Source: Monocercomonoides exilis PA203 (taxonomy: Eukaryota; Protista; Preaxostyla). From it: 64,000 bases of DNA. The notes under the pieces were generated by a model. That model did no database searches and was not told where the DNA came from. It saw only the letters and a list, made by a program, of their open reading frames with translations. The translations under genes and the position numbers were made by a program. Location: NCBI GenBank assembly GCA_001643675.2, contig LSRY02000003.1, positions 2,294,001 through 2,358,000 of the forward strand, in the 5' to 3' direction. Below, piece by piece: positions 1-59,958 of this stretch. The number at the start of each line of letters is the position of its first letter. Within the stretch, counting starts at the first letter, position 1.

Positions 1-1095
1 TGTATTCAGCGTTTTCAGCTTGTCCATTATTATACACTCTTTTTGTTGGAGTTGTTGAACCACAATTCTCGAATGGAGATTGAGTAATGGAATTACCACT
101 GAAAAACACATCGTTTCCTCTGCCATTTGTTGCGGTGTTGCCATCAAAGAAACAGAAAGTGATGAATTTTCCTCCATTCATCCAGTTATATGTTGCATAA
201 CAGTAAATGGCAGCGCCTCCATAATTAGTAGAGGCAGTCAATTCGTTGTTAATAAATTGACAATCATTGATCAAAAATTGACTAGGTTTGTTACTTGGAG
301 GATAACGAAATGTTAAAGAGCCAGCAGAATCACCGCCAGAATTTGCGATGCATTTGCAGTTTGAAAACAGGAATTGACCATTTGATGGCATGTCATTAAG
401 CAAGAAGTACCAGCCAGTTCCACACCAACTTGTTATTGAACAACTTACCACTCTATTTTCTGAAAATGTCCAAACAGAACTGGATTGTGGCCAGCCGACA
501 TGAGCAGCTCCTCCATGAGCAGCTGAGCAACCCGTGAAGTTTGATTTTGAAATGTCAATTTTCAACAAATATACACAGTATAATGCTCCACTATGATCAT
601 CAGATGAGCAATTGTCGAATGAACAAAAAGTGATTGTGAGATTTGCATTCGTGCAGTTGACATGAAGTGCACCTCCACGACTGCTTCCACTGCTTGAATT
701 TTCCCATTCGCACCATTCAAATTTGTGGCTGTTCTCATCAAAATCAAACAATCTTCCAAGTGATTTTCTTTGAGATTCATTTCCCACGTGCACGACAGCA
801 GCATTTGTCGAAGAGCGTGTTTGGTGAAGAAAAGAGGCATTGAAGGCAGAGAGAGAAGTGGATGGGTTGTTGAGGTTGGGGAGGATGACTCCATCGATGG
901 AGTTGTGAGTGTGTTTGAAGAGGGATGAGTGGATGGAGAGGGATGAGTGAAGGGAGAAGGAGGGGATAGTATTGGTATTGGAGTTTGTGGAAGAAGAAGT
1001 GGTTGAGGTTGTTGAGGAGGCAGAAACGGATGAGGTAAGTGAGTGAGAGGGAAGAGATTGTTGAAATGGATGGGATTCGGACGAGGAGATGATTG
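1..1095 (-). pseudogene. Beta-helix (Pmp-like GGA/FxxN) surface protein family, copy 1; 5'-truncated, runs off the window start
   Basis: Manual translation of the minus strand gives IDGVILPNLNNPSTSLSAFNASFLHQTRSS...EWCEWENSSSGSSRGGALHVNC...SLTFRYPP...RVYNNGQAENAEY, homologous to the other copies. No signal-peptide region upstream. Confidence 0.8.
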
Positions 1096-3416
1096 AAAAG
1101 AGAGTATAGGAAGAGTGAAAAGAGAAATTTTAAAAATTCTTTTGTGTATGTTTGTGTTAAAGAAAATGAAATTGCTCAAATTGTTTCATTTTTCCTTCAA
1201 ATTATTCTTTTTGATGAAAAGAAATTGCCTTGTGTTATCTGCAATGAAAATGAAAATTAAAAAATTATAGAAATGAATTTTTGAATCAATAATTAAAATT
1301 TCATTTTGTTTCATTTTCGCGTTTTCATTAAAAAAACGAAAAGATCACATTTTCAAAAGATATTTATTTCTGAGAAAACTGAAAACACAAAATTCAACAA
1401 GAAATCGAAAAATATTCCAATAATTATAAATATTTGTTATCTGGCTTAAACTCAGCAGAAATTAGTGTTTATTAACTTTTTTTATCCCCACTTATTTGTG
1501 AATAAATAACTTAAGAAGAATATGAGGGTGAAAGTGAATTTAGGGATGGCTTTTTTGATTAATTATGAAAAATCATTTCATTATTAACATTTGGCGTGAA
1601 TATTTCCACTGTTTATAATTTTGAAAAATTATCTTTGAAATTCAAAAGAACACTTCATCTGTAATATTTATCGTTATTTGATACTGTATTTGCATTGACC
1701 AATCAAGGATGATGCATTTTTTAATGAAAAAAAGATTATATTGTCAATTTTTCATTAAAACTTTTTTTTTGTTTAAATTTCAAAAAAACAAAAATCAATT
1801 TTTCAACAAATTTCTGTTCCCACTCACATTTCTTTTCTTAAAAGGAAATAATTACATTGCTTCGGTTCTGTTTCCATTTTGGTGAAGTTTTATTAGTTGG
1901 AACAAAAATTTGATTAAAAAATGATATTTTTATTTTATTTGATAATTAAACAAAAGGAAGTTTTCAAAAAAAAAATTAGCCATAAAGTACTAGCAAACAA
2001 AAAAAAGAAAATCAAATGAAATGAATGATTTTGTTTTTTTGGTATTGCATGAAAAGAAAGGAAATGGAAAAGCTTAGCAAATATTTCAAAAATGTGTCTG
2101 GTTTTATTTGTTTGAAAATAATAAAAAAATAGATATTTTTTCCTATTATTCATAGTTTCATTGACATGAGTCCTTTCCATTGAGAGGGAAAACTTTATTT
2201 TTTGTTGATATCACAAATATCATCTCTTTCAATTTTCCAAAAGAAAAATAAAATGAAATTTTCTTCTTTCTTTTCTTAAAAAAAAAGAAAAGCAATAATA
2301 TTGAAGTGGAATGCCATTCTTTGTTAATTTTTTCAACTTTTTGTTTAAAATTTGTCACTTCAAACATTCACATTTCCAGAATCTATATGTGAAAAACAAC
2401 TGAAGGATAACACTGAAAAATTGTTGATTGTAATGATTTCAAAGATAATCACCCAATATTGAACTATTGTTGTCAACAACAAACAAACTTGATAGCGGAG
2501 AATATCACATTTCTCATTCAAAATGTGAAAAAGACTTTGGCCTTCACAATGGATCATTTGAAGAACACACAAAAAATTTTTTCATCAAAAAGCTTCTAAC
2601 AAGAACAATTATTGTGATAACGGATATTTGAACCTGTGATCATTTTCGATGAAAAGATGGTTCACAAAAGGTGATGATAAATATTAATTGAATATTCATG
2701 AAATGATGACTGAAATGTTTATAATTATTTTTCATTTTTTTATTCAGTTGAAAAGAATAACGAGGTGGAAATATCTTTGAATAAACTCACATTTCAACAA
2801 AAGCATCACTTGATTGTTTCAACAGAAAATTGAGAATCCATTATTTTTGAGAATCCTTTGTTCTTGGTTTTTCTGAAAAATGGATCCAATGATACAGAAT
2901 CGAAAAGTGAATAAACGAAGAAATTATCAAAATCAGTGAAGTTCTCCAATCCCAAAAATTTTCATTCAAATTTACATATTTTCAGTCAACAACAATGATT
3001 TTTTTAAAGGAAATAATTTTGAATATCAAGTTATTGTCGAACTTGACTATTGATTCGTTTTTAAATCAAAAATAAAAAATTGTTTTTAAAAATCAATTTT
3101 TCATTTTCTGGTTGCAAAATAGTAATTATTATTAAGGCATCTGAAGAACAAAACAAAAGAAGAACATTCTCAATAAAATATGTATTTTCGATTTACCAAA
3201 AGATCATTCAGAAAACAATACAAAAGGTATTTTGATGAGTGGGTTAAAAATAAAATTATGATTTTTCAATTCTTTGTTAGAATAGAAAGGATATCAATTC
3301 TGAAAAAATTCTTCAAAAAGAGAAACAAAAAGAAATTCATATTTGGAATCATAGAAATTTCATCGAAAATTGTTTGTGATAAAATAATTGAAAATCTCAA
3401 CACTATATGCAAATAA

Positions 3417-4420
3417 ATGCTGAAAATATTCATCTTGAACACTTTTCATATTTTGAAGCAAATTCTCGATTTAATTCAATGGCAAAATTCATTCTCTTTC
3501 TTTCCATTCACTCCTCTCTCTTTCTTCCCTTCCCTCAATAGCCCATCCACTTCTCTCTCTGCCTTCAATGTCTCTTTCCTCCATCAAACTCGATCTTTAC
3601 CAAATGATCCTGTGAAATATAACGGATCTGAATCTCAACAAGAGAAATTAAGCAGATTGTCCTTCACTGCTTTGAATAGCTATATCTTTGAGTGGTGCGA
3701 ATGGAATAATTCAAATGGTGGTTCTTCATCTGGTGGTGCACTTTATGTGGTTTGCACAAATGCAAATCTCACAATCACTTCTTGTTCATTCAATAATTGT
3801 TCAAATACAAATCACGGTGGAGCGTTATACAGTTACAGTTTACAGAATGTGAACATCGCTAAATCCAATTTTTCAAACTGTTCGGCATTACATGGAGGCG
3901 CAATTTGTATTGATGGTCAAAAATCATCTTCTGTTTATTCATTCTCAGATAATAGAGTTGAAGGGTGTAAAATAACGGGCATTTATGGAACTGGTTGGTA
4001 TTTCTGGATCTATAACATGACCTCAGCAAGTCAATTCCTGCTCACCAAATGCAAGTGCATTTCAAATTCTGGTGGTGATTCTGCTGGTTCTCTCACATTC
4101 AATTCTCCTCCAACCAATAAGCCAAATCAATTTTTAATTAATGATTGTCAGTTCTTAAACAATAAATTGACATCAACTTCAACTTCCTATGGTGGTGCTG
4201 CGCTGTGCTGCACAAAAACATCAAATTGGATGAGCGGGTTCAAATTCATCGCATTCTGTTTCTTCGATGGCAACACTGCAACTAATGGCAGAGGGAATGA
4301 TGTGTTTTTCAGTGGAAGCAGCATCACCCAATCTCCATTCCAGCAATGCGGTTCAACAACTCCAACACTATGAGTGTGGAATAAAAATACAGCTGATAAC
4401 TCTGAATAAAACAGCTGGCT
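3417..4420 (+). pseudogene. Beta-helix surface protein family, copy 2 (ORF 3417-4373, premature stops)
   Basis: Core EWCEW...GGAL...FCFFDGNTATNGRGNDVFFSG present. TGA at 4371 replaces the conserved Arg of RVWN, and a TAA replaces Tyr in the ADNxEY tail. Confidence 0.8.
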
Positions 4421-5142
4421 TCCTCATCTTTTCTCTCATAATTCTTCCAATTAAATGCTTTTCCCGCTTTCTCCATTTTTCCAAGCATTTTTGCTTTCTT
4501 TATTTTCTTCCTTCATCATGCTTCAAATTTTCTATCTTTTTTTTCAAAACTTTTGATTTTTCCTGCATTTAGTCACTTGTCCCTGCTTGTTGTTTCGCTT
4601 CTCGAACACTTTCCTCTGTTTATTCAATTATTCTTCTTCTCAAATCCAACTTCCAACTCAAACTTTGAATTCAATCTTCTTCTTCCTTTCATTCAAAAAA
4701 TATCTTCAATCCTCTCAATCTCATTTCCATTTAGCATGCACCCTAAATCAAGAATTTCTTTTCCTATCCTCTTCCAATTTTCATTTGAAATTTTCTCCTT
4801 CATCAATGTATTTGCTTGTTTCCATTTCTTTTTTCTCTTTATTTCTAATGCTGACACAATTGATGGAGAATTCAAAATGGATGAAGTGGATTTTGAGGAA
4901 ACTGTTGTGCGACATGTTGTTGGAGTTTTGCAAGAAGAAGACGAAGACGACGAAGACGAAGACGACGAAGACGACGAAGACGAAGACGACGAAGACGAAG
5001 ACGAGGATGATGAATGAATAGTACAAGCTGATTGATGGTCGAGATTTGCGAAAATGAATGATAACAAATTGAACAGAGAGTTTCGCTGAAATCGTTATTT
5101 CTTGTTTTTCAACTTTGTTTCCGCGTTCTTCTGACAAGAAGA

Positions 5143-6355
5143 ATCCTCCAACTCATCCCTCTCTATCCACTCATCCCTCTTCCTCCACACCCACAATCCC
5201 ATCGATGGAGTCATCCTCCCCAACCTCAACAACCCATTCACTTCTCTCTCTGCATTCAATGCTTCTTTTCTCCACCAAACACGTTCTTCCTCTAATGATG
5301 TTGTAAGATATAACGGATCCGAAACTCAAAAAAAGGAATTAAGTCGATTGCCCTTTACTGATTTGAATAGCTATCTCTTTGAATGGTGTGAATGGAATAA
5401 TTCAAAAAGCGAAAGTGATTGGGGTGGAGCACTTTCTGTTGTTTGCGCAAACGCAAATCTCGCTATCACTTCTTGCTCATTCAATAAATGTACATCAAGC
5501 AATGGTGAAGGAGGAGCAATATTCTGTCAATATTTATTACAAATCAGCATCACAAAATCGAATTTCACAAATTGCCAGGCGAGACATGGAGGAGCTGCGA
5601 GATTAGATAATCCACAATCATCTTCTGTTTGGACATTCTCAGAAAACAAAGTGGAAAGTTGTTCAATAACAAGTTGGTGTGGAACTGGTTGGTACTTTTC
5701 CCTCTATTACATGCCCTCAGATGCTCAATTCCTGTTTTCCAAATGCAAGTGCATTTCAAATTCCGGTGGAAATTCAGCTGGTTCTTTAACATTCAATAAT
5801 CCTCCACAAAATAAACCAAGTCAATTTTCAATCGTTGAGTGCCAGTTCATAAACAACAAATTGACAAGTGCATCATCTACACGCGGAGGAGCTGCGCTGT
5901 GTTGCACAGCAACTTATTCCTGGATGAATAGTATAAAATTCATCACATTCTGCTTTTTCGATGGCAACACTGCCAAAAATGGCAGGGGAAATGATGTGTT
6001 CTTCAGTGGAAGCAGCATCACTCAATCTCCATTTGAGAATTGTGGTTCAACAACTCCAACACAAAGAGTCTGGAACAACAATACAGCAGACAATGAAACT
6101 TTCAATGGCTGGCTCCCCCTCGTTGCCCAGAACAAAATCGTTGCCAGCAATGGAACTGATGCTGATGCCTGTGGCAGACCCCAACAGACCCCATGTGCCA
6201 CCATCGAGTATGCCCTCACTGGCTTCATTTCCCTCCTCCACGACGCCTCTCTCACCCTCCTCACCTCAACATTTGTTCCTCTTCAAACACTCACTTTCAG
6301 CGCAGTTGACACAAAAATCATTGATAACAATGAACTTTATCAGATTCTCATATAA
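5143..6355 (+). pseudogene. Beta-helix surface protein family, copy 3 (5'-truncated, open frame, no ATG/leader)
   Basis: Frame is open from HTHNPIDG (~5186) through the core and the DACGRPQQTPCATIEYAL domain, then truncated at DTKIIDN. Confidence 0.8.
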
Positions 6356-11766: not shown

Positions 11767-13040
11767 TCATGAACATGAAGTGAAATGGAAAACGATTAAT
11801 ATTTGAAGATGAAACGATCGAGAAAAGTTTAATATTAAAAATGATGAAAATGGAATGAATAATAAAGAAATCAGAAAATGTTTATCTTTTCCAGTGATTT
11901 TTGTAATTGGAGCACGAAATGTGAGAGTGTTTGTGGGAGTGAAAATGGAGACGAGAAGAGAGAGGGAGGCATCGCTGAAGGGAGCAATGCACCCGAGAGC
12001 ATACTCCACTGTGGCACATGGGCGTTGCTGTGTTTTGCCACAGGCATCGACATCACTTCCACTGTTGGAAACGATTTTGTTCTGGTTGATGATTGGAAGC
12101 CAGCTGTTGTACACATTGCTATCAGCTGTATTGTTATTCCACACTCTTTTTGCTTGGGTTGTTGAGCCACAATTTTCAAACGGAGATTGTGTTATGGAAT
12201 TACCACTGAAAAATACATCATTTCCTCTTCCATTTGCAGCTATATTTCCATCGAAGAAACAGAAAGTGATGAATTTTATTCCATTCATCCAAGAATAAGT
12301 TGAATAGAAGAAAATGGCAGCACCTCCATAATTGACAGAGGCAGTCAGTTTATTATTTATAAACTGACACTCAACGATTGAAAATTGATTTGGTTTGTTT
12401 TGTGGAGGCCAACGAAATGTGAGTGAGCCGGTTGAATCTTTACCAGAATTTGAGATGCACTTGCATTTGGTGAACATGAATTGACCGTTTGAAGAAAAAT
12501 CACCAATATAAAAATACCATCCAGTTCCGCACCAGTTTGTTATTGAACAATTTTCGACTTTGTTTTCTGAGAATGAATAAACGGAAGATGATTGTCTGCC
12601 ATCAATATCAATTGCACCTCCATGAGGAGCTGAACAGTTTGAAAAATTGGATATCGCGATATTCACGTTCTGCAAACAGTAAGTGTGTATTGCTCCACCA
12701 CCAGTATCGCCTGTGATCGAACATTTGCTGAATGAACAAGAAATTATTGAGAGATTTGCATTGGCACAAACAACATTAAGTGCTCCTCCATAATCATTTT
12801 GTCCATTTGAATTATTCCACTCACACCATTCGAAGCGATGACTGTTCACATCAAACGAAGTCAATCTTCCAGGTGATTTTCTGTGAGTTTCTGATCCGAC
12901 ATGAACAACAGGATCATTTGATGAAGATCGAGTTTGGTGGAGAAAAGAAGAGTTGAAGGCAGAGAGAGAGGTGGATGGCTTGTTGAGGTTGGGGAGGATG
13001 GCACCATCGATGGGGTTGTGAGTGTGGAGGAAGATGGTTG
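11767..13040 (-). pseudogene. Beta-helix surface protein family, copy 4 (5'-truncated, open frame)
   Basis: HTHNPIDG block at ~13030-13000, then ORF 11767-12864 core and DACGKTQQRPCATVEYALGC. Homology ends at KITG (~11890). Confidence 0.8.
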
Positions 13041-13195
13041 AATTGGAGGATTTTATTTATCAGAAGAACAAACAAAAATGAAAGAAGAGAAAATGATTTC
13101 ATCGAAAATCTTTGTTTTTATTTATATTCATTTCCGCAAATCTCAACCTTCAATCAACTCATCAGTTCATTCATTTTCATCACATCATACAGCTT

Positions 13196-13364
13196 CTTCT
13201 TCGTCTTCTTCGTCTTCTTCGTCTTCTTCGTCTTCTTCGTCTTCTTCGTCTTCTTCGTCTTCTTCGTCTTCTTCGTCTTCTTCGTCTTCTTCGTCTTCTT
13301 CGTCTTCTTCGTCTTCTTCGTCTTCTTCGTCTTCTTCGTCTTCTTCGTCTTCTTCGTCTTCTTC
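13196..13364. repeat. (TCTTCTTCG)n tandem repeat within the acidic spacer module
   Basis: Perfect 9-mer array. Related expansions occur at 4935-5013, 55420-55530 and 57422-57580. Confidence 0.9.
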
Positions 13365-15210: not shown

Positions 15211-16451
15211 TTATAAAGAAATAAGATAAAGTTCATTGTTATCAATGATTTTTGTATCAACTGCATTGAAAGTCAGTGTTTGAAGAGGAACAAATGTTGA
15301 GGAAAGGAGGGTGAGAGAGGCGTCGTGGAGGAGGGAAATGAAGCCAGTGAGGGCATACTCGATGGTGGCACATGGGGTCTGTTGGGGTCTGCCACAGGCA
15401 TCAGCATCAGTTCCATTGCTGGCAACGATTTTATTCTGGGCAATGAGTGGGAGCCAGCCATTATACACAGCGTTATCAGCTTGTCCATTATTCCACACTC
15501 TTTTCGATAGGGTTGTTGATCCACAATTCTCGAATGGGGATTGGGTGATACTGCTTCCATTGAAGAACACATCGTTTCCTCTGCCATTTGTTGCTGTGTT
15601 TCCATCGAAAAAGCAGAATGTGATGAATTTAACATTATTCATCCAATCATATGTTCTTGTGCAACACAACGCAGCTCCACCATATGTGGTTGGATTTTCG
15701 ACTTTGTTGTTGATGAACTGGCACTCTTGGAGCAAGCATTGTTTTGGTTTTTCTGGTGGAAGCCAATGAAACGTGACTGCTCCAGCTGCATCACCACCAG
15801 TATTTGCAATACAGGTGCAATTTTTGAACAAGAATTTTGCATCTGATGGCATGTTGTCGAGACCAAAATACCATCCAGTTCCAATACCGCCTGTTATTGA
15901 GCACCTTTCTACTCTGTTTTCTGAGAATGTCCATACAGAACTGGATTGTGGATAAGCTATGCAAGTTGCTCCTCCACCTGACGCAGAGCTGTTTGTAAAA
16001 TTGGATTTTGAAATATCAATTTTCAACAAATATACACAATACAAAGCTCCACCATTTCCATTACAGGAACAATCGTTGAATGAACAAGAAGTGATTGTGA
16101 GATTTGCATTTGTGCAAACAACAGAAAGTGCTCCACCCCAATCACTTTCGCTTTTTGAATTATTCCATTCGCACCATTCAAATTTGTGGCTGTTCTCATC
16201 AAAATCAGTCAATCTTCCAGGTGATTTTCTTTGAGATTCATTTCCCACGTGCACGACAGCAGCATTTGGTGAAGAGCGTGTTTGGTGGAGGAAAGATGCA
16301 TTGAAGGCAGAGAGAGAAGTGGATGGGCTATTGAGGGAAGGGAAGAAAGAGAGAGGAGTGAATGGAAAGAAAGAGAATGAATTTTGCAATTGAAATTTTC
16401 AGAAATTTGCTTCAAAATATGAAAATTTCTCAAAATAAATAATTTTAGCAT
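15211..16451 (-). pseudogene. Beta-helix surface protein family, copy 5
   Basis: ORF 15211-16389 holds the core plus the DACGRPQQTPC domain. Its 5' end (MLKLFIL...QNSFSFFPF) is paralogous to copy 2 but frameshifted. Confidence 0.8.
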
Positions 16452-24644: not shown

Positions 24645-25995
24645 TTATATGAGAACCTGAAAAAATTCATCATTTCCTGTTGTTTTTGTGTCAGCAGCGC
24701 TGGATGTGAGTGTTTGAGTTGGGACAAATGCTGAGGTGAGGAGGGTGAGAGAGGCGTCTTGGAGGAGGGAAATGAAGCCAGTGAGGGCATACTCGATGGT
24801 GGCACATGGGGTCTGTTGGGGTCTGCCACAGGCATCTGTATTGGTTCCATTGCTGGCAACGATTTTATTCTGGGCGATGAGAGGGAGCCAGCCATTATAC
24901 ACTGCATTGTCAGCTGTATTGTTATTCCACACCCTTTGTGTTGGGGTTGTTGATCCGCACTGATTAAATGGAGATTGGGTGATGCTGCTTCCGCTGAAGA
25001 ACACATCGTTTCCTCTGCCATTTGTTGCGGAATTGCCATCGAAGAAACAGAATGTGATGAATCTAATTTCATTCATCCAAGTGAAGGTGTACATGCAGCA
25101 CAGCCCAGCTCCTCCGCGTGTGGAGGAGGCAGTCAATTCGTTGTTAATAAATTGGCACTCATTGATCAAAAATTGACTCGGTTTGTTTCCTGGAGGATTA
25201 TAAAATGTTAAAGAACCAGCAGAATCTCCACCAGAATTTGAGATACACTTACATTTAGAAAACAAAAATTGAAAATTTAACTGATTATAATCTAGAGCAA
25301 AATACCAACCAGTTCCACACCAATTTGTTATTGAACAACTTTCAACTTTGTTTTCTGAGAATGAATAAACAGAATTGGATTGAGGATACCACATGGAAAC
25401 ACCTCCTCCATGTCTTGCCTGACAATTTGAGAAATTGGATTTGGTCATATTAATTATTGATAAATTACAACAGTATAACGCTCCTCCAACATCACCACTC
25501 GAACAGTTGAAAAATGAGCACAAGGTGATTGCGAGATTTGCATTTACACAAACAACATAAAGTGCACCTCCATATTCATTCCCACTGTTTGAATCATTCC
25601 ATTCGCACCACTCAAATTTATGGCTGTTCTCATCAAATGAAGTCAATCTTCCAGGTTTCGCTCTTTGAGTTTCATTTCCAATGTGTTCAACAGGGGCATT
25701 TGATGAAGATCGTGTTTGGTGAAGGAAAGATGTGTTGAAGGCAGAGAGAGAAGTGGATGGGCTGTTGAGGTTTGGGAGAATGGCACCATCGATGGGGTTG
25801 TGGGTGTGGATAAAGATGGATGAGTGGATGGAAAGAGATGAGTGAAGGGAGAAGGAGGGGATTGTATTGGTGTTGGTGAAAGTGGAAGTGGAAGTGGAAG
25901 AAGACGAAGAGGTGGTTGAGGTGAATGGATTGAGTGAGTGTGAGGGAAGGGATGGAAGAGATGGATGGGATTGGGGAGAGGAGATGTTTGAGAAG
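24645..25995 (-). pseudogene. Beta-helix surface protein family, copy 7 (5'-truncated, open frame)
   Basis: Begins in the S/H-rich linker near 25995, followed by the HTHNPIDG block, core and DACGRPQQTPC domain. Truncated at DTKTTGN. Confidence 0.8.
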
Positions 25996-26147
25996 AGTTT
26001 AAATGGAATATGATGTATTTTGTTTAATGTACATTTGCATATATTTATGTTTGAAGCAACTTAACATTTTTTTTGAATGAGTTCATGTTTAGATAAGATA
26101 ATGAATTTAATTCTAATATCGTGATAAATACCTTTAAAAAAATATTA

Positions 26148-36438: not shown

Positions 36439-36537
<99 letters not shown>

Positions 36538-38743: not shown

Positions 38744-38778
<35 letters not shown>

Positions 38779-41119: not shown

Positions 41120-41152
<33 letters not shown>

Positions 41153-41408
41153 TTTCTGTTTTTCTCATTTTTCGTCTTCTCATCAGAAGTTTTATTGTTT
41201 TTTGTGATATTTTTGGTTTCTATTGGTTTATTATTCGAATTACTAATGTTATTATTATTATTATTGTTCATTTCTTCATTGATTATCTTATCATTGTTTA
41301 TTTCAAATGAAGAAGAAAGAGAAGAGGAAGAAGAGGAAGAAGAAAGAGAAGAAGAAGGAGAAGGAGAAAAATCCAAAGAAGAAGAAACATTATCCCATTT
41401 GGAAAAGA

Positions 41409-41439
<31 letters not shown>

Positions 41440-41775
41440 AGAAATAGGAAAAGAATAAGGAAGAGAAAGAGAATTCGAGAGAGAAAGAGAGAGAGAAAGA
41501 GAAAGAGGATCAAAAACAGAGGAAGAAGAAGAAGAAGAAGAAAGAGAAGCATCTTTTAATTGCAAAGGAAAAGAATCAGGAGAAAAAGAAAGACGTTTTG
41601 TGTAGTCAGCATTGGGAGAGGAGAGGATGTTAGAAGAAGAAGAGGAAGAAGAAGATGATGATGAAAGGTTCTATTGATTAAAAGGAATAAAGAAATACAA
41701 ATAATCAAATAAATGAATGAACGAATACATTAATTAATTAATTAATTGTTAACAAAAATTTTTCAATCAATCAAT

Positions 41776-49528: not shown

Positions 49529-49531
<3 letters not shown>

Positions 49532-50821
49532 TTGCGTTTCGAATTGTTGGACAATGTTTGCGTCTTCAAAAAGTTTGCATATAAATTCATTTTTTTTTAC
49601 ATCGAAAAATATTTGTTATTGCCATCTGTTAGATGATTGACACAAAATGGACAAGTTTTTGATTATCTCTTGTTATTTCATCAAAACGATTTTTTCACTT
49701 ATTCATCTGTGTCAATTCTGCATTTTTATTATCTTTTTGAATGATAGATCAAATATTTGAAATCTTGATATTTTTCACGAATTATTTCAAAATGATAGAA
49801 TTCTTTTGTCCCGATGAAAACATGAGATTTTTCATTTTGATTACAAGAATTATTAATTAGTGCAATTGATGGTGTGTCAGATTAAATTCAAATTCGATCA
49901 CTCAAATCATATAATTTGTGTTTATTTGGATAAAAATGAATATATCAAAAAATGAGAAAAAACAAATTGCTATTTGAAAAAAAGCACTCAATAAACGAAT
50001 TCATAAACAATCAATATTTCAGTTTGTTGTGGTGTTTTTTGTTGTTGGAAAATATTTTTCAATGAAAAGAAGTATTTTACTGTCTTTAATATGAATATTG
50101 AAGAAGAAGTGAAATCACAATAACCAATGGCAAAATGGGTTTGCCAATAGTTTATTTTATTTATTAAAAAAAAAAAATAAAATAAAAATAAAAACATCAA
50201 AACACTAATTCAAATAAATATCAATAATTGTTGTGAGGATTGAATATTCACAAAGATATCCACAATTATTCACGCTCCAAGAAAAATAACATTTTTGAAA
50301 AAATCAGAACAAACAAATAACTCCGTTTCGACAACAACAACAATTTACAACTCTTTCAAATTTTGATAATAGCAAACCGCAAACTCATCATTTTGTGCAC
50401 AAAAATTCTCATTTCAAATTATTTTATTGTGCGGCAAATACAAAGAAAAAGAAAAACAAAGAACAGATATTTTTTTATCAATCTTTTTTCGCCTTTACCA
50501 CAGAAAGCACAATCGTTCAGAAGGCAAACAGAATGAAGATGCTCACAACAAATATCATAATCTCAGTCAACGCGTTATTCCAATTTCAAACAACACTCAT
50601 TCTTTCCACAAAATAATTCATGCTCTAATGAAAATCTTTTTCTTCTTCTCCTGCTGCATCGCTCACTCGTTCAAAAATAATATTCCAAAGAAAACCCAGA
50701 AAAAAAGCAATTATAAAATTTAGATTCCAATAATGATCAATCTACCATCCGTTTCATAATCATCATCGTGAATGCACACTTTACAAATATAATTCTATTC
50801 TATTTCTATTGATTTATTCTT

Positions 50822-51751
50822 TTGCTCACCAAAAACCCCATTGATGGCGCCATCCTCCCCAACCTCAACAGTCCATCCACTTCTCTCTCTGCCTTCAATG
50901 CATCTTTTCTTCACCAAACACGATCTTCATCAAATGCCCCTGTTGAACACATTGGAAATGAAACTCAAAGAGTGAAACTTGGAAGATTGACTTCATTCGA
51001 TGAGAACAGCCATAAATTTGAATGGTGCGAATGGAATAATTCAAACGGTGGTAGTGATCATGGAGGTGCACTTAAAGTTGTTTGCACAAATGCAAATCTC
51101 ACAATCACTTCTTGTTCATTTTTCAATTGTTCGAGTGGTGATCATGGTGGAGCGTTGCGTTGCGATAACCTGCTGAAAATTGACATCTCAAAATCCAATT
51201 TCACAAGCTGCTCAGCTGCTCATGGGGGAGCAAATTGCATTGCTTATCCTCAATCAAATTCTGTTTATTCATTTTCAGAAAACAGAGTTGAAAATTGTTC
51301 AATAACAAATTGGTGTGGAACCGGTTGGCTTTTTGGACTAAATTATAATCAGTTAAATTTTCAATTTGTGTTCTCCAAATGCAAGTGCATCTCAAATTCC
51401 GGTGGAGATTCAGCGGGTTCTCTCACATTCAATAATCCTCCAAGCAACAAACCAAGTCAGTATTCATTCAATGATTGCCACTTCATAAACAACAATCTGA
51501 CTGCCTCTTCCACATATGGCGGCGCTGCCATTTATTTTCATTCGACTTATTCCTGGATGAATGGAATGAAATTCATCACATTCTGTTTTTTCGATGGAAA
51601 CACTGCCAAAAATGGCAGAGGAAATGATGTGTTCTTCAGTGGTAATGCAATCACTCAATCCCCATTTGAGAATTGTGGATCAACAACTCCAACGGAAAGA
51701 GTGTGGAACGCAGGAACTGCTGATAATGCTGAATATAATGGCTGGCCGTAG
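50822..51751 (+). pseudogene. Beta-helix surface protein family, copy 8 (5'-truncated, open frame)
   Basis: Starts abruptly at TKNPIDG with no ATG, carries the full core, and ends ADNAEYNGWP*. Confidence 0.8.
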
Positions 51752-52394
51752 CTTATCTTTCCTTCTCTAATTTTTCCAATGAAAAGTCTTTCTAACTTTC
51801 GTCTCTTATTTTTGCTTTCTCTATTTTCTCCTCTCCTTGCATTCTTTCTTTTCTCTCAAATTTGATAGTTTATTTCCTGAATCTCGTCATTTGCCCCTGT
51901 TTGTTTTACCGCTTCTCAAAATTACCCTCCGTTTATCCAAATACTTTCCTTCCAAAATCCAACATTCAACTCGAATCTCCTCTTCGAAACATCTCTCTTT
52001 AATCCAAAAATATCTTCAACCCTCTCAATCTCATTTCCATCTTGAATGAATCCGAGATTAACAATTTCTTTCTCTTTCCTCTTCTATTTTTTATTTTTTA
52101 TTTTTTTCCTTCGGTTGTACAATTTCTCTGTTTCTTTCTCATTTCATTCATGATCTCTGATGATGAAACAAATCATGAAGAAATTCAAAATAGATGAAGT
52201 ATATGTTGAGGAAATTGTTGTGTTATATGTTGTTGATGTGTTTGAAGAAGAAGAAGAAGAAGAGAAATAAATTAATGAGATAATTGAAGGCAGAGAATTG
52301 TGAAGATAAATGAAGACAAACAAAAATGAAGATGTTCGCAGAAATCGTTTAATTTCAGTTTTTTCAACATTGAGTTCATCTGGCAAATAAGATC

Positions 52395-54684
52395 CTCCAA
52401 CCTATCCCTCTCCATCCATTCAACCATCTTCCTCCACACCCACAATCCCATCGATGGTGCCATCCTTCCCAACCTCAACAGCTAGTTCACTTCTCTCTCT
52501 GCCTTCAATGCCTCTTTCCTTCATCAAACACGATCTTCATCAAATGCTCCTGTGGTACATGTGGGAACGGAATCTCAAAGAGCGAAACCTGGAAGATTGA
52601 TTTCATTCGATTTAAACAGCCATCGCTTCGAATGGTGCGAATGGGAAAACACAACTGGAGGGCCAGATCGAGGAGGAGCGCTTTATGTGGATTGCGCAAA
52701 TGCTAATCTTGCAATCATATCGTGTTCATTCAACAATTGCTCATGCAATTGGGATGGCGGAGCATTGTTTTGTAATGGTTCGTTGAAGTTAACCATCATG
52801 CAGTCCAATTTCACAAGTTGTTCGGCTAAATATGGAGGAGCAGTCACCTCATGGAATCCACAATCTAATTCTGTTTGGACATTCTCTGAAAACCGAGCGG
52901 AAAGCTGTTCAATAACAAATTGGTGCGGAACTGGTTGGTATTTTCATGTATATGATATGCCATCAAATGCTCAATTCCTGTTCACAAAATGCAAGTGCAT
53001 CTCAAATTCTGGTGGTGATTCTGCTGGTTCTCTCACATTCAATTGGCCTCCACAAAATAAACCAAATCAATTTTTGGTTAATGATTGCCAATTCATAAAC
53101 AACAAATTGACAAGTTCATCAACTTCCAATGGTGGTGCCGCGCTGTGCTGCACAAGAACATATGATTGGATGAATGGAGTAAAATTCATCACATTCTGTT
53201 TCTTCGATGGCAACACAGCAACAAATGGCAGAGGAAACGATGTGTTCTTCAGTGGAAGCAGCATCATTCAATCTCCATTTGAGAATTGTGGCTCAACAAC
53301 TTTAACAAAAAGAGTGTATAATAATGGACAAGCTGATAATACCGTGTACAATGGTTGGCTTCCAATCATCAACCAGAACAAAATAGTTTCAAATGGTGGA
53401 AGTGATGCTGATGCCTGTGGCAAAACACAGCAAAGCCCCTGTGCCACAGTGGAGTATGCCCTCGGATGCGTTGCTCCCTTCAGCGATGCCTCCCTCTCCC
53501 TTCTCGTCTCCACTTTCACTCCCACAAAGACTCTCACATTTCGTGCTCCAAATACAAAAATCACTGGAAATGGAACAACTTCCACCATCATCGCCTCCAG
53601 TGGCATTCTCCAGCCATCAAACTCACATTCACACTCATCACAATCAACATCATCTCTTTCATCCTTGTCATCATCATCAACATCTTCTTCACCAGATCCA
53701 TCTGCCTCGTCTGCCCTCTTCCAACAGACCCAAGGCTCCCTCACAGTCTCTGCCCTCGCCATTGCCCACAACTCCACAAATCAAATCACCCCCATCCTCT
53801 TCCACCTCTCCGGTAACTCCCCTTCCCTCAACCTCAACACAACCACCATCACAGGAACAACCTCCATAACAATCACAACCCCCCTCTTCTTCCTCACTGC
53901 TGGCTCCCTCGCCCTCAACCACACAGCAATCACCAGTCTCCCCCTCAACAGCCAAAGCATCTTCCACCTCACCTCCCTCACAGCTCCCCTCGCTCTCAAC
54001 TCCTCCAACATCACCGACATCACCTCCACTGCCACCCCCACCAGCTGTGTTCTCTCCTCTGCCACCTCCCCTGCCCTCTCCCTCTCCCTCGCCAACTGCA
54101 CCATCACCAACATCAACTCAGCTCCGCAAAACCAACAGACTGCCACCAATGGCGGGTGCATCTCATTCGCCTCATCTGCTCCTGCCAACACATTTTCGGT
54201 GAGTGACACCACCTTCTCCACCTGCTCTGTGAGCGAGGATACAAGTTCTGGAGGAAGAGGCGGTGCTCTCATGGTTGAGTTCAATGAAGGCTCACAAGTG
54301 TCAGAATCCTCCTTTTCCATCGCCAACATCGTGTTTTCAGCCAACAAGGCCAGTGTCGGAAGAGATATGTATTTTGTGTGTGAATCATTTGTCGCTTCCG
54401 TGAAGGAACCCTTGTTCGCCTTCATGAGAAGCATCACTCAGAAAGACAACTCGGCTGTTGGACATGACAGAACAGAAGCATTCGGTGATTGGAATGTCGA
54501 TTTGTTTATATTTCTCAACGGGCATGCAGCTGACAATGAATATGTGAATGATCATCTTGGCATCAAAGCAATGAATTGCTGGCTATCAAAGATGCCCCGC
54601 AAGAGCACACGCAATGCGATGGGTCTTCTGAAGAAGGTGCAGATCATAAGGCAGAAATCATTTCATCAGCTGACTTGTCGGTGA
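52395..54684 (+). pseudogene. Beta-helix surface protein family, copy 9 (5'-truncated; only copy with the long C-terminal region)
   Basis: HTHNPIDG block followed by an in-frame TAG at 52483. ORF 52552-54684 holds the core, the DACGKTQQSPC domain and further beta-helix (NGGCI, GRGGAL, FSANKASVGRDMY). Confidence 0.8.
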
Positions 54685-57654
54685 AAATATGCGCAAATGA
54701 ATGCAAAGTCGAAGATATTTGAAGAGGAGGCACAAACACAAAAAATAAGAAATTGACTCAGAAACATTTTTGATGGATTAATCATCACATATCTGCTGTA
54801 TATTTGGCTGTTTCATAGAATTTTCTGTTAAATATGCCTTTTCAAATAAATATGTTTCCTTTATCGTCTCATCTTTGATCGCATGTTGAAGGCTCGTAAC
54901 ATTGTCAAAATCTGAAGAACATCCAATATGACAAAATAGTTATATTTTTTATTTAACGCCATCTGACAGACTTTTTCTTGGCTAAATATAGAATCATTTC
55001 GTTGCTGTGTTAGGCCTGGCTGAAATTCAATACAAGAATGAATTTTCATTTTGCGATTATGAATAGAAAATTGATGACAATGTTTGACTTCGAATTCCAC
55101 GGGAGATGCATCAGAAGAAAATTGTAACATTTTTGTTGCTCCTTGAAGAAGGCGCTGAAGAAGAACATAACGAGAATGAAAAGATTGATATTGACCCAAA
55201 TAGACTTTTCACCACAAATAACATGTATGGAAATACAAATCATTCAGTTATTGATATGTTGAGAGGAGGAAATGCAAATGAAGCTATTTTTTGCTCATGT
55301 GGTATTTCTGCTCACAGAAAATGCTTAATATTTCCGAATGAGGATGCTCTGCCCCAATGTCAAGCGAGAGAAATACAATAAAAATTTAGAATAAAGTGAA
55401 GAAGAAGAAGGAAAAAGCGAAGAAGAAGGTGAAGAAGAAGGTGAAGAAGAAGGTGAAGAAGAAGGTGAAGAAGAAGGTGAAGAAGAAGGTGAAGAAGAAG
55501 GTGAAGAAGAAGGTGAAGAAGAAGAAGAAGATGCAGTTGAGAAATGAGAAAACAGTCGAACAATATTTATGATGTTGAGAATAATTTGTATGAAGTCGTT
55601 GATTGGCCGAAATGTTTCATTTAATGCATTCACTTCAGATTGGCCAGAAAAACTCAATCACAATATTTGTGACGAACAGATTGGATAAATCAATCTTGCT
55701 GTATATTCACAACTTCAGTTCACTTTCTTTCTGTGATTTCCCCTCTTTTCCCCTCAAAAATAGAAAATGTTGATTTTTCTCAATTTCCATTCCCTTCTTC
55801 CATTCAGCACACAAAATACTCAGAAAATATCAATCCCCTCCTTTTCTTCATCTTTCCCTGTCTCTTCCATAAAACATTCTTCTCCTCTCATAAAAGTTAC
55901 CCCCTTTTCATATGAACATTTCTCAATTTCCCTCTTCTTTCAAGCTTTTGCCCTCTTTTCTTTCTCTTCAAAATCCATTTCCCCCATCAACAATCCGTCC
56001 TCTTTCATCATCCCCAGTCACTTCTCTATATATTTTCTACATTTTCTTCTATAAATCTCCACTTGCTCTTCTCCATCCCTCTGTCTCGGAATTTCTTCCA
56101 TTCAAAAATCATTCTTGAAATATTAACATTCAAAAATATACTCAACTCCTACCCCCTGCCACAAAATTTAAACTTCCATCTCTTCTCTGCCCCATATATC
56201 TCCTGTGCCTGGTGTTGATGAGATAAACGAGATATATTTCTTTTGGCGGTTGAGAATATTATTAAAGGAGATGATCATGCCAAAAACAGAAAAAACACAT
56301 CCTGACAGGCAACACAATGTGTATGGGTTGAGAAGACCCTCCAGTGAGACATACAATGTATTTTGTGGAGGTGCATTCTTTGTTGCATTTTGACCATTCT
56401 GAGACTGAAATAAAGAGATTTATTTTTTGAATGATGATGGCTGTGGAAATGAGTGTGCTTGGCAAAAAACAGTCGAAGCGCAGTTTGGCCTTTATTTATT
56501 TTTCTATATATGAATATTAACATGTTGAATGTTTTTGTGTTGTTTTCAGGGCAGGAGGTGGAAAAGAATGAAAATGAATGAAATGTTTATATCTCGTTGT
56601 GCAGGGTGACTATGGAGTTGGGTGAGCGAATTCATATGGAAAGTGCCCAGGATGAAGGGATTGGGAAGGGAATTGGAGATGATATTTTCAGACGAAAAAC
56701 GGGATATTTTTCAATGATGAGGATGGAATTTGAGCAGAATGCATAAATCTCACATTTTTCAGCAGAGCAATAAATCGATGCATTTGATGGAGAAATGACT
56801 GATGAAAAGGATGATTTGCGAATCAGATGATGAAACACTTGATAAAGGAAGGAATAATGAATTTTTATTGGAGGGAAACAGTTGCCTAGGGGGAAAAGGT
56901 TGGAAAATACTTATAGAAATGGTAAGAAGGTTTGTTGTCGTAATATTTTTGAAGTAATTATTATTATTATTTTTAAGAATGCTGAAAGGATGAGGGATTA
57001 GATCGCTTTGAAGAAGAAAGAGAAAAGTGGGGAAGGAAGAATAAAGACGGACAGATGAAATGCGAGATATTTCGAAGATGGCTTGCATTGTGCTTTGGCG
57101 AAGAATTATTTTTGAGGAAAGATGATTTTTTGTGAAAGAAGAAAAGATGGAATGAAAAAGGAATTGCTCAATATTTCCTATTTTTAGATGGAAAGAGAGA
57201 AAGAGATTGAGCTGAAAGTGAAAAAGTATTCAAAGGTTTCTCCTCTGCAGAAGAAAAAGGGATAGAAGACGAGAATTTCAATGAATTTCTCCGTTGGTAT
57301 TAATTGACACTCAACTTCACAGTTTTCAACAATCAATCGTCTTATTCGATTCTTTCATCATCATCATTACCATCATCTTCTTCTTCCTCTTCTTCAAACA
57401 CATCGTCAACATTTCGCACAGCTTCTTCTTCTTCTTCTTCTTCTTCTTCTTCTTCTTCTTCTCCTTCTTCTTCTTCTTCTTCTCCTTCTTCTTCTTCTTC
57501 TTCTTCTTCTTCTTCTTCTTCTTCTTCTTCTTCTTCTTCTTCTTCTTCTTCTTCTTCTTCTTCTTCTTCTTCTTCTTCTTCAGATACATCATCGACATTT
57601 CGCACAGCTTCTTCTTCTTCTTTATCATCATTCATATTATCTGATTGGATTTCT

Positions 57655-59958
57655 TCAAATTCTGCATCTGCACCAGAGATTAAGAGAGAAATGAAAAGGA
57701 AACAAGGAAATGTATTGATGAAGGAAAAAATAACAAATAAAAATAAGAAAAAGAAAGAGAAAGAAATTCTTGAACAAGGGTTCATGCTTGATGGAAATGA
57801 GATCGAGAGGGTTAAAGAGATTTTTGACAGAAAGGAAGAAGATGCGTGAATGAAAGGAAGAATAAAGGAAAGAAGAGGAGAATGCGGCAGGATGTTGGAT
57901 TTGTGAAGAGATGGAAAGAGAAAGAAATATGAAGAAATGGACTTGGATGAGCAGTGGAAGATGTTTGAGATTCAAAACAAGAAACAAGGGAAGATGATGA
58001 AATGCAGAAGAAATCAAAAATATGTTAAGAGAAGAAAACAGAAAAGGCAAAAATGCTTGGAAAAGAGAAGATAGTGAGAAAGAAATTCCATTGGAAGAAC
58101 ATGAAAAGAAAAGCCAGAGCCTGTCATTTTTCTCAACGTTGTCAGCAGTACCAGCTTTCCACACTCTTTTTGTTGGGGTTGTTGAACCACAATTCTCAAA
58201 CGGAGATTGAGCTATGGAATTACCACTGAAGAACACATCGTTTCCTCTTCCATTTTTGGCAGTGTTTCCATCGAAAAAACAGAATGTGATGAATCTCATA
58301 TTGTTCATCCAAGAGTAAGTTGAATAGAAGAAAATGGCAGCGCCGCCATAAGATGTGGAAGCAGAAAGATTGTTATTAATGAACTGACATACAACGATTG
58401 AAAATTGATTTGGTTTATTATTTGGAGGATATGAAAATGTCAGAGAACCAGCAGAATCTTTTCCAGAATTTGCGATACACCAACATTTGGAAAACAGGAA
58501 TTGGGCATTTGTTGGAGTTCCTTCAAGCGCAAAATACCAGCCAGTTCCACACCAACCTGATATTGAACAATTTTCCACTCTATTTTCTGAGAATACCCAA
58601 ACAGAATTTGATTGTGGCCAAGCTATGCAAGTTGCTCCTCCATGAGCAGCTGAGCAGCTTGTGAAATTGGATTTTGAGATGTCAATTTTCAGCAGGTTAT
58701 CGCAACGCAACGCTCCACCATGATCACCACTCGAACAATTGAAAAATGAACAAGAAGTGATTGTGAGATTTGCATTTGTGCAAACAACTTTAAGTGCACC
58801 TCCATGATCACTACCACCGTTTGAATTATTCCATTCGCACCATTCAAATTGATAGCTGTTCAATTCAGAAAAACCCAACCTTCCAGGTGATTTTCTGTGA
58901 GTTTCATTTCCTTCATATGCAACAGCAGCATTTGATGAAGAGCGTATTTGGTGGAGAAAAGAAACATTGAAGGCAGAGAGAGAAGTGGCAGGGCTGTTGA
59001 GGTTGGGGAGGATGGCGCCATCGATGGGGTTGTGAGTGTGGAGGAAGAGGGATGAGTGGATGGAAAGGGATGAGTGAAGAGAGAAGGAGGGGATTGTATT
59101 GGTGTTGGTGTTGGTGGAAGAGGAATAAGAGGAAGAAGTGGTTGAGGTGAATGGGTTGAGTGAGTGGGAGGGAAGGGATGGAAGAGATGGATGGGATTGG
59201 GGAGATGAGATGTTGGAGAAGAGGGTGTTTGAGAGATGGAGATTGAGGTGGATTTGGAGATGGGGATGGAATTGGTGATGGTTATGGAGAGGGGAAGAGG
59301 AAGAGGAAATGGAAGGGGAAAGGGAAGGGGAAGGGGAAGAAAAAGAAGAGGATGTGGATGAGGATGAGGATGATGAAGGAGAAGGGGAAAGGGAAGGGGA
59401 AGGAGAAGGGGAAGGGGAAGAGAGGGAAGAAGGAGAAAAAAGGAAAGGCTGGACGAGGGAGATGAAGGAGGAGAAAGAGGAGTGGGAGATGGAGAATGAG
59501 GCAGGGATTGGGGAGTGGGCATTATGGAGGAGATTGTTTGGGATGGAGAAGAGGGGGAAGGAGAAGATGGCAGGTTGGTGGGTGGTGAGGGAGAAGTTTG
59601 TGAGGGCGAGGGAGGCATGGGCAGAGAGGAAGAGGGGGCATTGGTGGTGGTGGTGGCTGTTGGTGAGGGAAAGTGGGTGGATGGTGCAAGTGGAGGAGCA
59701 GATGGAGGCAGCTGAGTGGTGCTGGGCAGTGAGGAGTGGACAGCCACTGAGAGGGATGAGGTTGAGATGGGTCACACACAAGGAGGTGTTGATGAGGGCG
59801 AGGCTTGTCTGAGCGCCACAGATGTGATTTCCCGATGCATGTTCCACCTTGTCTGAGTGAGCGCCTCTGATGATGCTGTTTGCGATATTCTCTCCACGAA
59901 CCAGATTTATGGTGAGGAATGCGACGAGTATCTGAGCTAATAACGTGATCCTAATCAT
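57655..59958 (-). CDS. Beta-helix surface protein family, copy 10; only copy with ATG and signal peptide
   Basis: ATG at 59958 starts MIRITLLAQILVAFLTINLVRG, followed by the N-domain, linker and core. After NDR the paralogous TAG is TGG, giving a hydrophobic read-through tail. Confidence 0.8.
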   Translation of the reverse strand: MIRITLLAQILVAFLTINLVRGENIANSIIRGAHSDKVEHASGNHICGAQTSLALINTSLCVTHLNLIPLSGCPLLTAQHHSAASICSSTCTIHPLSLTNSHHHHQCPLFLSAHASLALTNFSLTTHQPAIFSFPLFSIPNNLLHNAHSPIPASFSISHSSFSSFISLVQPFLFSPSSLSSPSPSPSPSLSPSPSSSSSSSTSSSFSSPSPSLSPSISSSSSPLHNHHQFHPHLQIHLNLHLSNTLFSNISSPQSHPSLPSLPSHSLNPFTSTTSSSYSSSTNTNTNTIPSFSLHSSLSIHSSLFLHTHNPIDGAILPNLNSPATSLSAFNVSFLHQIRSSSNAAVAYEGNETHRKSPGRLGFSELNSYQFEWCEWNNSNGGSDHGGALKVVCTNANLTITSCSFFNCSSGDHGGALRCDNLLKIDISKSNFTSCSAAHGGATCIAWPQSNSVWVFSENRVENCSISGWCGTGWYFALEGTPTNAQFLFSKCWCIANSGKDSAGSLTFSYPPNNKPNQFSIVVCQFINNNLSASTSYGGAAIFFYSTYSWMNNMRFITFCFFDGNTAKNGRGNDVFFSGNSIAQSPFENCGSTTPTKRVWKAGTADNVEKNDRLWLFFSCSSNGISFSLSSLFQAFLPFLFSSLNIFLISSAFHHLPLFLVLNLKHLPLLIQVHFFIFLSLSISSQIQHPAAFSSSFLYSSFHSRIFFLSVKNLFNPLDLISIKHEPLFKNFFLFLFLIFICYFFLHQYISLFPFHFSLNLWCRCRI

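Follow-up and report, generated by a model that had tools for sequence, protein, structure and literature searches.

Start-less gene fragments that lack conserved splice signals and lie in decayed surroundings are normally dead. The 64,000-nucleotide stretch of Monocercomonoides exilis DNA analyzed here (the window) holds ten copies of one protein-coding core, most of them of this kind, and it raises a testable question in a gut commensal that can be grown in culture, namely whether the variable tip of a receptor family is supplied from a free-standing archive. A first-pass annotation had proposed that one expressible gene, c10, was served by nine silent donor copies built on a Pmp-like beta-helix scaffold.

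A tblastn search of the window with c10 found ten copies at 57-80% amino acid identity to c10 (Table 1), and all of them contain a common 269-codon block (SLSAFN...ENCGSTT), so the ten paralogs with a shared core recognized at first pass were recovered. The N-terminus of c10 was judged signal-peptide-like by inspection. After the head, c10 runs into a decayed CT-rich tail with no transmembrane segment (TM) and no kinase, making it a truncated fragment; it is absent from the annotated proteome. As had been noticed, c6 has the leader but has lost its ATG: it aligns to c10 from residue 4, and no in-frame ATG is present. The start and leader attributed to c10 are there, but c10 is not alone in having a start, as c2 also has an in-frame ATG and an intact ORF of 345 aa. 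Nor do all other copies begin near the conserved block: the 5' ends of c1 and c7 fall about 70-80 codons before it, within the Ser/Pro-rich region. The window's left edge cuts c1, which reaches, like c9, about aa 1056 of the full-length protein, and the annotated model on c1 (P0174) begins at an internal Met, 391. A TAG interrupts the conserved N-terminal motif of c9 (52483-52485), and stops lie immediately 3' of the core in c2 and c8. Apart from a CCCH zinc finger, scanning the window for Pfam, Rfam and tRNA matches yielded nothing further.

Table 1. Head copies, conversion tracts and duplication arms in the window (tblastn spans with c10 as query).
Feature	Position	Strand	tblastn span	Description
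c1	2..1156	-	2-1156(-)	head fragment from Ser/Pro-rich region, about aa 240 of full-length protein
c2	3417..4451	+	3519-4424(+)	ATG 3417, 34-codon non-homologous N-terminus, head 3519-4424, type-A 3' end
c3	5135..6352	+	5186-6319(+)	start-less head; MONOS_11907-class 5' junction with in-frame TGA; type-B 3' end at aa 693
c4	11770..13056	-	11890-13044(-)	start-less head; 5' junction class as c3/c9, TGA and TAA in junction; type-B 3' end
c5	15214..16398	-	15247-16344(-)	start-less head; 5' junction of c2 class, broken; type-B 3' end
c6	19123..20973	+	19144-20973(+)	full leader without ATG, then Ser/Pro region, head; type-A 3' end
c7	24648..26060	-	24675-26021(-)	head fragment from Ser/Pro-rich region; type-B 3' end
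c8	50813..51862	+	50816-51757(+)	start-less head; own 5' junction; type-A 3' end
c9	52330..54681	+	52405-54657(+)	aa 306-1056 of full-length protein; 5' junction class of c3/c4
c10	57658..59958	-	57658-59958(-)	ATG 59958, signal-peptide-like leader, Cys-rich N-terminal block, Ser/Pro region, head
conversion tract c8/c10	51015..51225 with 58640..58850	+ / -		211 nt identical; rest of the two cores 77.7%
conversion tract c6/c9	20245..20636 with 52630..53021	+ / +		392 nt at 97.7%; 76.9% outside tract
conversion tract c7/c8	25596..25724 with 50909..51037	- / +		129 nt at 96.9%
conversion tract c1/c5	704..807 with 16165..16268	- / -		104 nt at 97.1%
left arm, 6-kb inverted segmental duplication	17411..23400	+		carries c6
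right arm, same duplication	55497..61685	-		carries c10

All ten copies, c10 included, are N-terminal fragments of giant M. exilis receptor-like proteins. They show 68-80% amino acid identity to at least 126 genomic copies of the family head, 27 of which lie in open frames of 2,000-3,100 aa. The full-length receptors (2,500-3,100 aa) comprise a signal peptide, a Cys-rich block, a Ser/Pro region, the predicted beta-helix head, more beta-helix modules, a TM and a partial kinase; the head is the outermost domain of these surface proteins. In one example (L006:342-9425:-, 3,028 aa), the C-lobe matches Pfam PK_Tyr_Ser-Thr. When two full-length proteins were searched against the window with tblastn, family homology stopped at aa 620-626, 693 or 1056, and no TM or kinase match was found near any copy. 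Thus, the full-length members have TM and kinase, whereas the window copies are heads only, some with the leader or part of the stalk. Matches covering the head at full length came from M. exilis only. These receptors belong to the tyrosine-kinase-like "protein tyrosine kinase" family, which with 332 genes is the largest of the M. exilis genome (PMC6759080) and overlaps the "unclassified repeats", 28.9 Mb in total (PMC8767320). We found no account in the literature of the array of fragments or of the constraint and conversion tracts seen in it. Within the ectodomain, divergence is highest in the head, with a dS of about 0.8-0.9 compared with 0.07-0.28 in the block upstream and about 0.18 in that downstream. 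The type-B breakpoint coincides with the fall in dS, from 0.94 at aa 632-692 to 0.18 at aa 694-800.

Structure prediction points to a right-handed parallel beta-helix for the head. In VIA-align, the AlphaFold2 model (pLDDT 78.9, pTM 0.79) matched pectate-lyase-like and tailspike folds over 210-250 residues, with Z scores of 15-19, and Foldseek against the PDB gave weak matches, all of them beta-helices. Chlamydial Pmp and other proteins with Chlam_PMP (PF02415) or Beta_helix (PF13229) repeats would share this predicted fold, but c10 and the full-length M. exilis protein fall below every Pfam repeat model. Neither c10, c6 nor the full-length ectodomain matched PF02415 or PF13229, and the link to proteins bearing these repeats is indirect only, through hits that a profile of the core made to proteins with Chlam_PMP and Beta_helix repeats. 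The proposed Pmp-like scaffold is retained as a predicted beta-helix fold but not as a Pfam match.

The window belongs to an array of shortened head copies that spans roughly 1 Mb (about 1.48-2.51 Mb) on the right arm of C25, the largest M. exilis chromosome. A census built from search tables counted about 17-21 leader-bearing short forms like c10 within the array; in about 17 c10-like forms, ATG and leader are both retained and the 290 bp upstream are conserved. Outside the array, the genome contains hundreds of full-length genes. The family thus has far more than one or very few potential expression sites, and c10 is not the single expressible gene that it had been taken for.

The 269-codon block contains no stop and no gap in the ten copies and in 21 full-length genes. 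The remaining five reading frames of the same core DNA have 3-21 stops each, which rules out stop-poor composition as the source of the ORFs. In a neutral simulation of substitutions only, the probability that ten of ten copies stay stop-free was ≤3e-11 at K = 0.05 per lineage, so ORF retention is far above chance. Pairwise dN/dS was 0.25 among the fragments and 0.256 among the long genes. With least-squares branch lengths fitted to pairwise dN and dS, terminal-branch dN/dS was 0.246 for fragment heads versus 0.254 for full-length genes, and terminal dS ranged from 0.17 to 0.46; this detailed comparison took in 31 of roughly 500 heads. The common non-coding tails had K = 0.26-0.42 and 15-45 gap events per kb, compared with no gap events in the core. 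These results indicate that the start-less, ORF-retaining cores are under real purifying selection, equal to that of full-length genes, and they bear out the earlier observation that the spacers have decayed while the cores stay open.

Some of the fragments are transcribed. Exact-match RNA contigs were found on c1 (417-723), c2 (3548-3638 and 3966-4071) and c3 (5094-5194, 5507-5614, 5804-5914 and 6299-6400), and also in the spacer between c2 and c3, and 27-36% of the 31-mers of c10 were present in RNA runs. The 1.6-kb spacer at 1606-3213 had zero RNA depth in all four runs, which rules out DNA contamination of the RNA libraries. Therefore, the "donors" c1-c3 do not appear to be silent, contrary to what had been supposed for the nine copies.

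Exchange among the heads was detected by the PHI test for recombination (p = 0.001) and as near-identical tracts between otherwise diverged cores (Table 1), including one that links c9 to a full-length gene (L024) over 118 nt at 97.5%. The c10 core is a patchwork whose best matches are 94%, 98% and 82% in three segments; for most of it, no near-identical donor was found genome-wide, the best outside the c8 tract being 82-94%. For most of each head, the closest relative genome-wide is at 80-90%, implying that exchange is sparse on the mutation scale. The fragments interleave with the long genes in the core phylogeny, which conflicts with the junction class. The two arms of the c6/c10 duplication are 80-96% identical in their flanks (90-96% for the flanks of c6 and c10 themselves) but only 65-81% in their cores.

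Taken together, we tentatively favor, with a probability of roughly 0.45, the reading that the array is a selected reservoir of head variants, with gene conversion as its link to the family. The data show that a small number of truncated prototypes, which differed in their 5' and 3' junctions, spread by segmental and inverted duplication, as seen from junction classes common to several copies, whose flanks are homologous. The head-coding part has since remained under the protein-level purifying selection found in the full-length genes, whereas decay has affected leaders, tails and spacers. Through gene conversion, heads trade tracts of 50-400 nt among themselves as well as with leader-bearing short forms and full-length genes. 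Their sequence would be selected through use, by being copied into expressed family members. Most copies have no usable start or conserved splice signals, and passive refreshment would not account for so strong a constraint, so selection via use is the most likely route. Such a reservoir has no single expression site, and its exchange need not be programmed or frequent. Several considerations count against it. By a rough estimate, selection via rare donation alone would be too weak for a dN/dS of 0.25. The transcribed fragments may be translated by some unrecognized route, and an ATG may allow translation of some members of each junction class, as in c2 and MONOS_11907.

A rival reading, which we regard as unlikely but well worth weighing, is that the fragments are independent translated short genes for head-only proteins, secreted or not, with the leader-broken copies being recent pseudogenes. 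Translation would start at overlooked junction-class ATGs, in unannotated 5' exons or by non-AUG initiation. Core selection equal to that of full-length genes, the exact RNA contigs on c1-c3, the ATG and intact ORF of c2, and the c10-like forms (about 17) with ATG, leader and conserved upstream region are all as expected of short genes. So is MONOS_11907, which belongs to the junction class of c3, c4 and c9 and has an in-frame ATG with a hydrophobic, signal-peptide-like N-terminus; open frames of 420-438 aa recur in its class. However, the sequence upstream of the core contains stops but no in-frame ATG in c3, c4, c5, c8 and c9, and in c3, c4 and c5 the stops in the junction leader contrast directly with the open core. 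Per codon, stops are far denser in the stretch with the junction leader than in the core: 37% of MONOS_11907-class copies have one within the 75 codons searched (junction leader plus core start), and about half of c2-class copies have one in the equivalent stretch, compared with roughly 7% over 316 codons among the top-scoring cores, a list biased towards intact copies. Depending on junction class, up to about half to two-thirds of the copies are free of stops in the searched stretch, and the share of intact leaders (about 50-63%) is probably close to what neutral decay of 20-35 codons predicts; leader-broken copies still have intact cores. A search for conserved AG acceptors at the 5' junctions and for conserved GT donors at the type-B junction came up empty, and the RNA contigs contained no canonical splice joint over 6 kb; spliced upstream exons were rejected on these grounds. 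Every joint listed connects paralogous positions of c2 and c3, which identifies the contigs with such joints as coming from other paralogs. Finally, the annotation treats very few of the fragments as genes.

If c10 or a few leader-bearing copies were instead the expression site of programmed antigenic variation, with silent cassettes copied in at high frequency, such frequent use would account for the strength of the constraint. The cassettes are indeed start-less, ORF-retaining and in both orientations; leaderless c8 and leader-bearing c10 share an identical 211-nt tract; c6 and c10 are alike in their flanks but not in their cores; and the c10-like leaders are 88-94% identical versus about 73% at the amino acid level for their cores. 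Yet c10 is truncated and has no membrane anchor, there are 17-21 such loci in addition to hundreds of full-length genes, the "donors" are transcribed, two of the three tested segments of the c10 core have no donor above 94% or 82%, and the ATG is gone from c6, the twin of c10. We therefore give this explanation little credence. From the proposed archive with its expression site, the start-less constrained cores and the conversion tracts with leader-bearing copies survive, but the single expression site does not, and the silence of the donors is doubtful. High-frequency, short-patch templated diversification, running from a megabase start-less archive into about 20 leader-bearing forms and/or several hundred receptor genes, seems improbable to us. 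Gene conversion also underlies the remaining explanation, in which the fragments are functionless relics whose cores look constrained only via conversion from selected full-length genes, the flanks decaying for want of an intact template. Conversion tracts exist, one of them linking a fragment and a full-length gene, constraint ends where family homology ends, and fragments and long genes are interleaved in the tree. Against this, most of each core differs by 10-20% from all other copies in the genome, a sign that these stretches have long escaped overwriting, and is nevertheless lesion-free, with a dN/dS of 0.25. By our rough reckoning from tract frequency, overwriting runs at about 10-60 times the per-site mutation rate; at equilibrium, several lesions per core would then be expected where roughly none were observed. 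Functionless relics thus appear very doubtful.

In all, more than 100 M. exilis fragments appear to have been long held under the constraint of working genes while sharing recent tracts with leader-bearing and full-length members. The array also gives a name to part of the 35% of the M. exilis genome classed as "unclassified repeats".

Among gut protists, the Entamoeba transmembrane kinases and the Giardia VSPs are large variable surface-protein families. The M. exilis family resembles them as a very large type I membrane family with variable ectodomains, and the Entamoeba proteins also have kinase-like tails. Their ectodomains carry a CXXC-rich domain, whereas that of M. exilis is predicted to be a beta-helix, and an array on the megabase scale, made of ectodomain fragments that lack a start but are under selection, is not known to us from either group. 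Donor systems are known from the chicken Ig psi-V genes, Anaplasma msp2, Borrelia vls, Neisseria pilS and the trypanosome VSG archives. Like these, the M. exilis array consists of partial units without promoter or leader that lie in both orientations and keep their frame, with a variable core between conserved blocks and short tracts shared with leader-bearing copies. Unlike them, it has no single expression site, its putative donors are transcribed and exchange looks sparse. If true, templated diversification here would give a eukaryotic microbe its own equivalent, on a beta-helix scaffold, of psi-V conversion in chickens or VLR assembly in lampreys.

By tblastn of the c10 product (57658-59958, minus strand) against the window, we found ten paralogs (c1 to c10) on both strands, with 57-80% amino acid identity and MONOS_ entries as nearest database proteins throughout. 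The c10 frame opens with an ATG at 59958, and its N-terminus, by inspection, resembles a signal peptide. The c10 leader is present in c6 without an in-frame ATG, c1 and c7 begin about 70-80 codons before the HTHNPIDG/SLSAFN motif, and the remaining copies begin at or near it. A 269-codon block is free of stops and gaps in each of the ten copies, as it is in 21 full-length relatives; the TAG of c9 (52483-52485) is a blemish at the edge, and the stops of c2 and c8 lie directly 3' of the core. With ten tblastn matches and this open block, the first-pass observation of ten paralogs with start-less yet open cores holds. About 30 residues ahead of the beta-helix (NPIDG..LPNLN.P.TSLSAFN.SF, 58983-59040 and equivalents) are nearly invariant in 28 copies. 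This stretch, which has pLDDT <50 in the model and contains a conserved N-x-S sequon, may act as a motif for processing, glycosylation or docking.

In the M. exilis assembly (82.3 Mb, 101 contigs), the core was found in at least 126 scored places, 27 of the 126 within open frames of 2,000-3,100 aa. One such full-length gene, L006, encodes in order a signal peptide, a Cys-rich block, a Ser/Pro-rich region, the core (aa ~320-620), an extended series of additional beta-helix-like modules, a transmembrane segment (TM) and, at the C-terminus, part of a kinase domain (Pfam PK_Tyr_Ser-Thr at 1.4e-9, matching the C-lobe only). The largest M. exilis family is a kinase family that overlaps 'unclassified repeats' (PMC6759080, PMC8767320), and from the Pfam kinase hit the full-length head genes appear to belong to it. 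Aligned to two full-length proteins, all ten window copies are N-terminal fragments. Because its homology to these proteins ends at aa 620-626, c10 is not a complete family gene; it is a head-only form, and the CT-rich tail behind it owes its scarcity of stops to composition.

The core is predicted to fold as a right-handed beta-helix (model pLDDT 79; VIA-align Z 15-19). Its profile reaches proteins bearing Chlam_PMP and Beta_helix repeats, and Pfam models run against M. exilis proteins gave no direct match for the head. In a comparison of full-length genes (L002+L005 against L006 and L003), two have the TM and cytoplasmic part in common (76-97% nucleotide identity), while in a third this part is unrelated (~40-60%) despite an ectodomain with ~80-90% identity; entire cytoplasmic modules seem to have been exchanged at the TM boundary. 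An open frame at 62258-63487 (minus strand) shares just 26% amino acid identity with a full-length gene's head and is therefore a distant paralog.

The copies group into junction classes whose flank homology reaches past the coding part; type-A tails are mutually homologous, as are type-B tails. We counted at least 46 genomic places with the MONOS_11907-type junction and about 10 with the c2-type, nearly all of them on contig C25 at 1.48-2.51 Mb, an interval that includes the window (C25:2294001-2358000). A 6-kb inverted segmental duplication carries c6 and c10. The c10-type leader (88-94% amino acid identity) recurs in ~17 further short forms from that part of C25, whose open frames span 617-773 aa; therefore c10, proposed by the first-pass annotation as the unique expressible site, is instead one among ~20 leader-bearing short forms. 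Many array copies on C25 (~1.49-2.51 Mb) form palindromes, inverted pairs with identical scores that lie 3-17 kb apart. The small contig C98 repeats the copies around C25:1.58 Mb, perhaps through assembly redundancy. Elsewhere in the window, a 1,746-aa open frame (36325-41565, minus strand) combines long internal repeats of low complexity with a CCCH zinc finger (Pfam zf-CCCH, 1.9e-5). Its ~200-bp repeat unit recurs at six places (Table), and GC and AT skew are extreme at 38-42 kb.

We found similar constraint in fragments and full-length genes, by pairwise dN/dS (window copies 0.25, full-length genes 0.256) and on terminal branches (0.246 and 0.254; terminal dS 0.17-0.46), with branch lengths least-squares-fitted onto the ML topology. 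Within a junction class, non-coding tails have K=0.26-0.42 and 15-45 gap events per kb, against 0 gap events in the core. In a substitution-only neutral simulation, the probability that all ten cores stay stop-free was 3e-11 when K per lineage was set to 0.05, and lower by far at K=0.10-0.15. A stop occurs within 75 codons in 37% of the MONOS_11907-class copies that align into the leader, in the equivalent junction-leader stretch of about half of the c2-class copies, and within the 316 core codons in ~7% of copies on a top-scoring list biased towards intact ones. By these comparisons, the short junction leaders evolve as neutral DNA would. Because leaders are broken (c3, c4, c5) or neutral-like while cores are intact, and no conserved AG acceptor or GT donor was found at the junctions of the copies compared, constraint is located in the head itself, independent of an upstream in-frame start.

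Four metatranscriptome runs of one study contain 27-36% of the sampled 31-mers of c10. Short Logan contigs from four runs of one study, placed on window 400-6400, match several copies (Table) and indicate the presence of transcripts, not their level, strand or ends; none has a canonical splice joint. None of the four runs gave any depth over the 1.6-kb spacer (1606-3213), which argues against DNA carry-over. On the plus strand at 3415-6400, exactly matching contigs continue unbroken from c2 through its tail and the spacer into c3, and the spacer upstream of 3415 is uncovered; c2 and c3 may form one read-through transcription unit from near the ATG of c2.

Sequence is exchanged among the heads. 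The core tree has a star-like shape in which fragments are mixed with full-length genes, and copies of one junction class do not form a clade. The PHI test rejected no recombination for all copies, fragments alone and long genes alone (p=0.001 each), and conversion tracts rise above a background of ~77% identity (Table). For c8/c10, with 77.7% identity elsewhere, we calculate a chance of ~1e-23 for 211 consecutive matches. Three 120-nt pieces of the c10 core, searched against the genome, revealed a patchwork, with best non-self matches of 94% (to a leaderless fragment at a distance of 366 kb), 98% (to c8) and 82%. In the c6/c10 duplication, flanks are 90-96% identical in places but cores just 65-81%; the c6 core is nearest to a leaderless fragment (92%) and to c9 (87%). 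In full-length genes the head (dS ~0.8-0.9) is flanked by low-divergence blocks at aa 150-265 and from aa 694 onwards (dS ~0.18), and when blocks are compared, dS falls at the type-B breakpoint, from 0.94 in aa 632-692 to 0.18 in aa 694-800.

Features of the window copies and their relatives (window coordinates unless a locus is named)
Feature	Copy or place	Coordinates	Size or identity
Mismatch-free RNA contig	c1	417-723	at least 100 nt
Mismatch-free RNA contig	c2	3966-4071	at least 100 nt
RNA contig, one mismatch	c2 tail	4465-4700	236 nt
Mismatch-free RNA contigs	c2-c3 spacer	4801-4927, 5094-5194	at least 100 nt
Mismatch-free RNA contigs	c3	5507-5614, 5804-5914, 6299-6400	at least 100 nt
Repeat unit of the zf-CCCH open frame		7188-7423, 13193-13480, 13630-13866, 45172-45374, 55388-55550, 57337-57635	~200 bp
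5' junction class	c2, c5		
5' junction class of MONOS_11907	c3, c4, c9		
3' end, type A	c2, c6, c8, c10	homology stops at aa 620-626	
3' end, type B	c3, c4, c5, c7	homology stops at aa 693	
3' end	c9; c1 per its annotated model	aa 1056	
Full-length gene	L006	342-9425 (minus strand)	3,028 aa
Tract	c8/c10	51015-51225 / 58640-58850	211 nt, 100%
Tract	c6/c9		392 nt, 97.7%
Tract	c7/c8		129 nt, 96.9%
Tract	c1/c5		104 nt, 97.1%
Tract	c3/c5		57 nt, 100%
Tract	c9/full-length gene L024		118 nt, 97.5%
Tracts	several full-length gene pairs		e.g. 264 nt, 99.2%

We tentatively read the array as a selected reservoir of head sequence tied to the family via conversion (probability about 0.45), in which the heads would serve as templates copied to other family members. 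The array anatomy and the conversion tracts fit template use. By a rough estimate, exchange as sparse as that seen would transmit too little selection, unless templates are used far more often than a genome snapshot records. That the fragments are instead translated as genes is less likely, though plausible: they are transcribed, and some copies, such as c2 and MONOS_11907, are complete ORFs, but missing starts and neutral-like leaders are difficult to reconcile with ordinary genes.

It is improbable that the fragments are functionless relics whose cores are passively refreshed from intact genes, as most of each head differs by 10-20% from all other genomic copies and is still clean; it therefore evolved on its own, and refreshment cannot explain the constraint. 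We give similarly little credence to the programmed system of the first-pass annotation, in which start-less donor cassettes feed one expression site as in antigenic variation, since c10 is one of ~20 leader-bearing short forms and is itself head-only.
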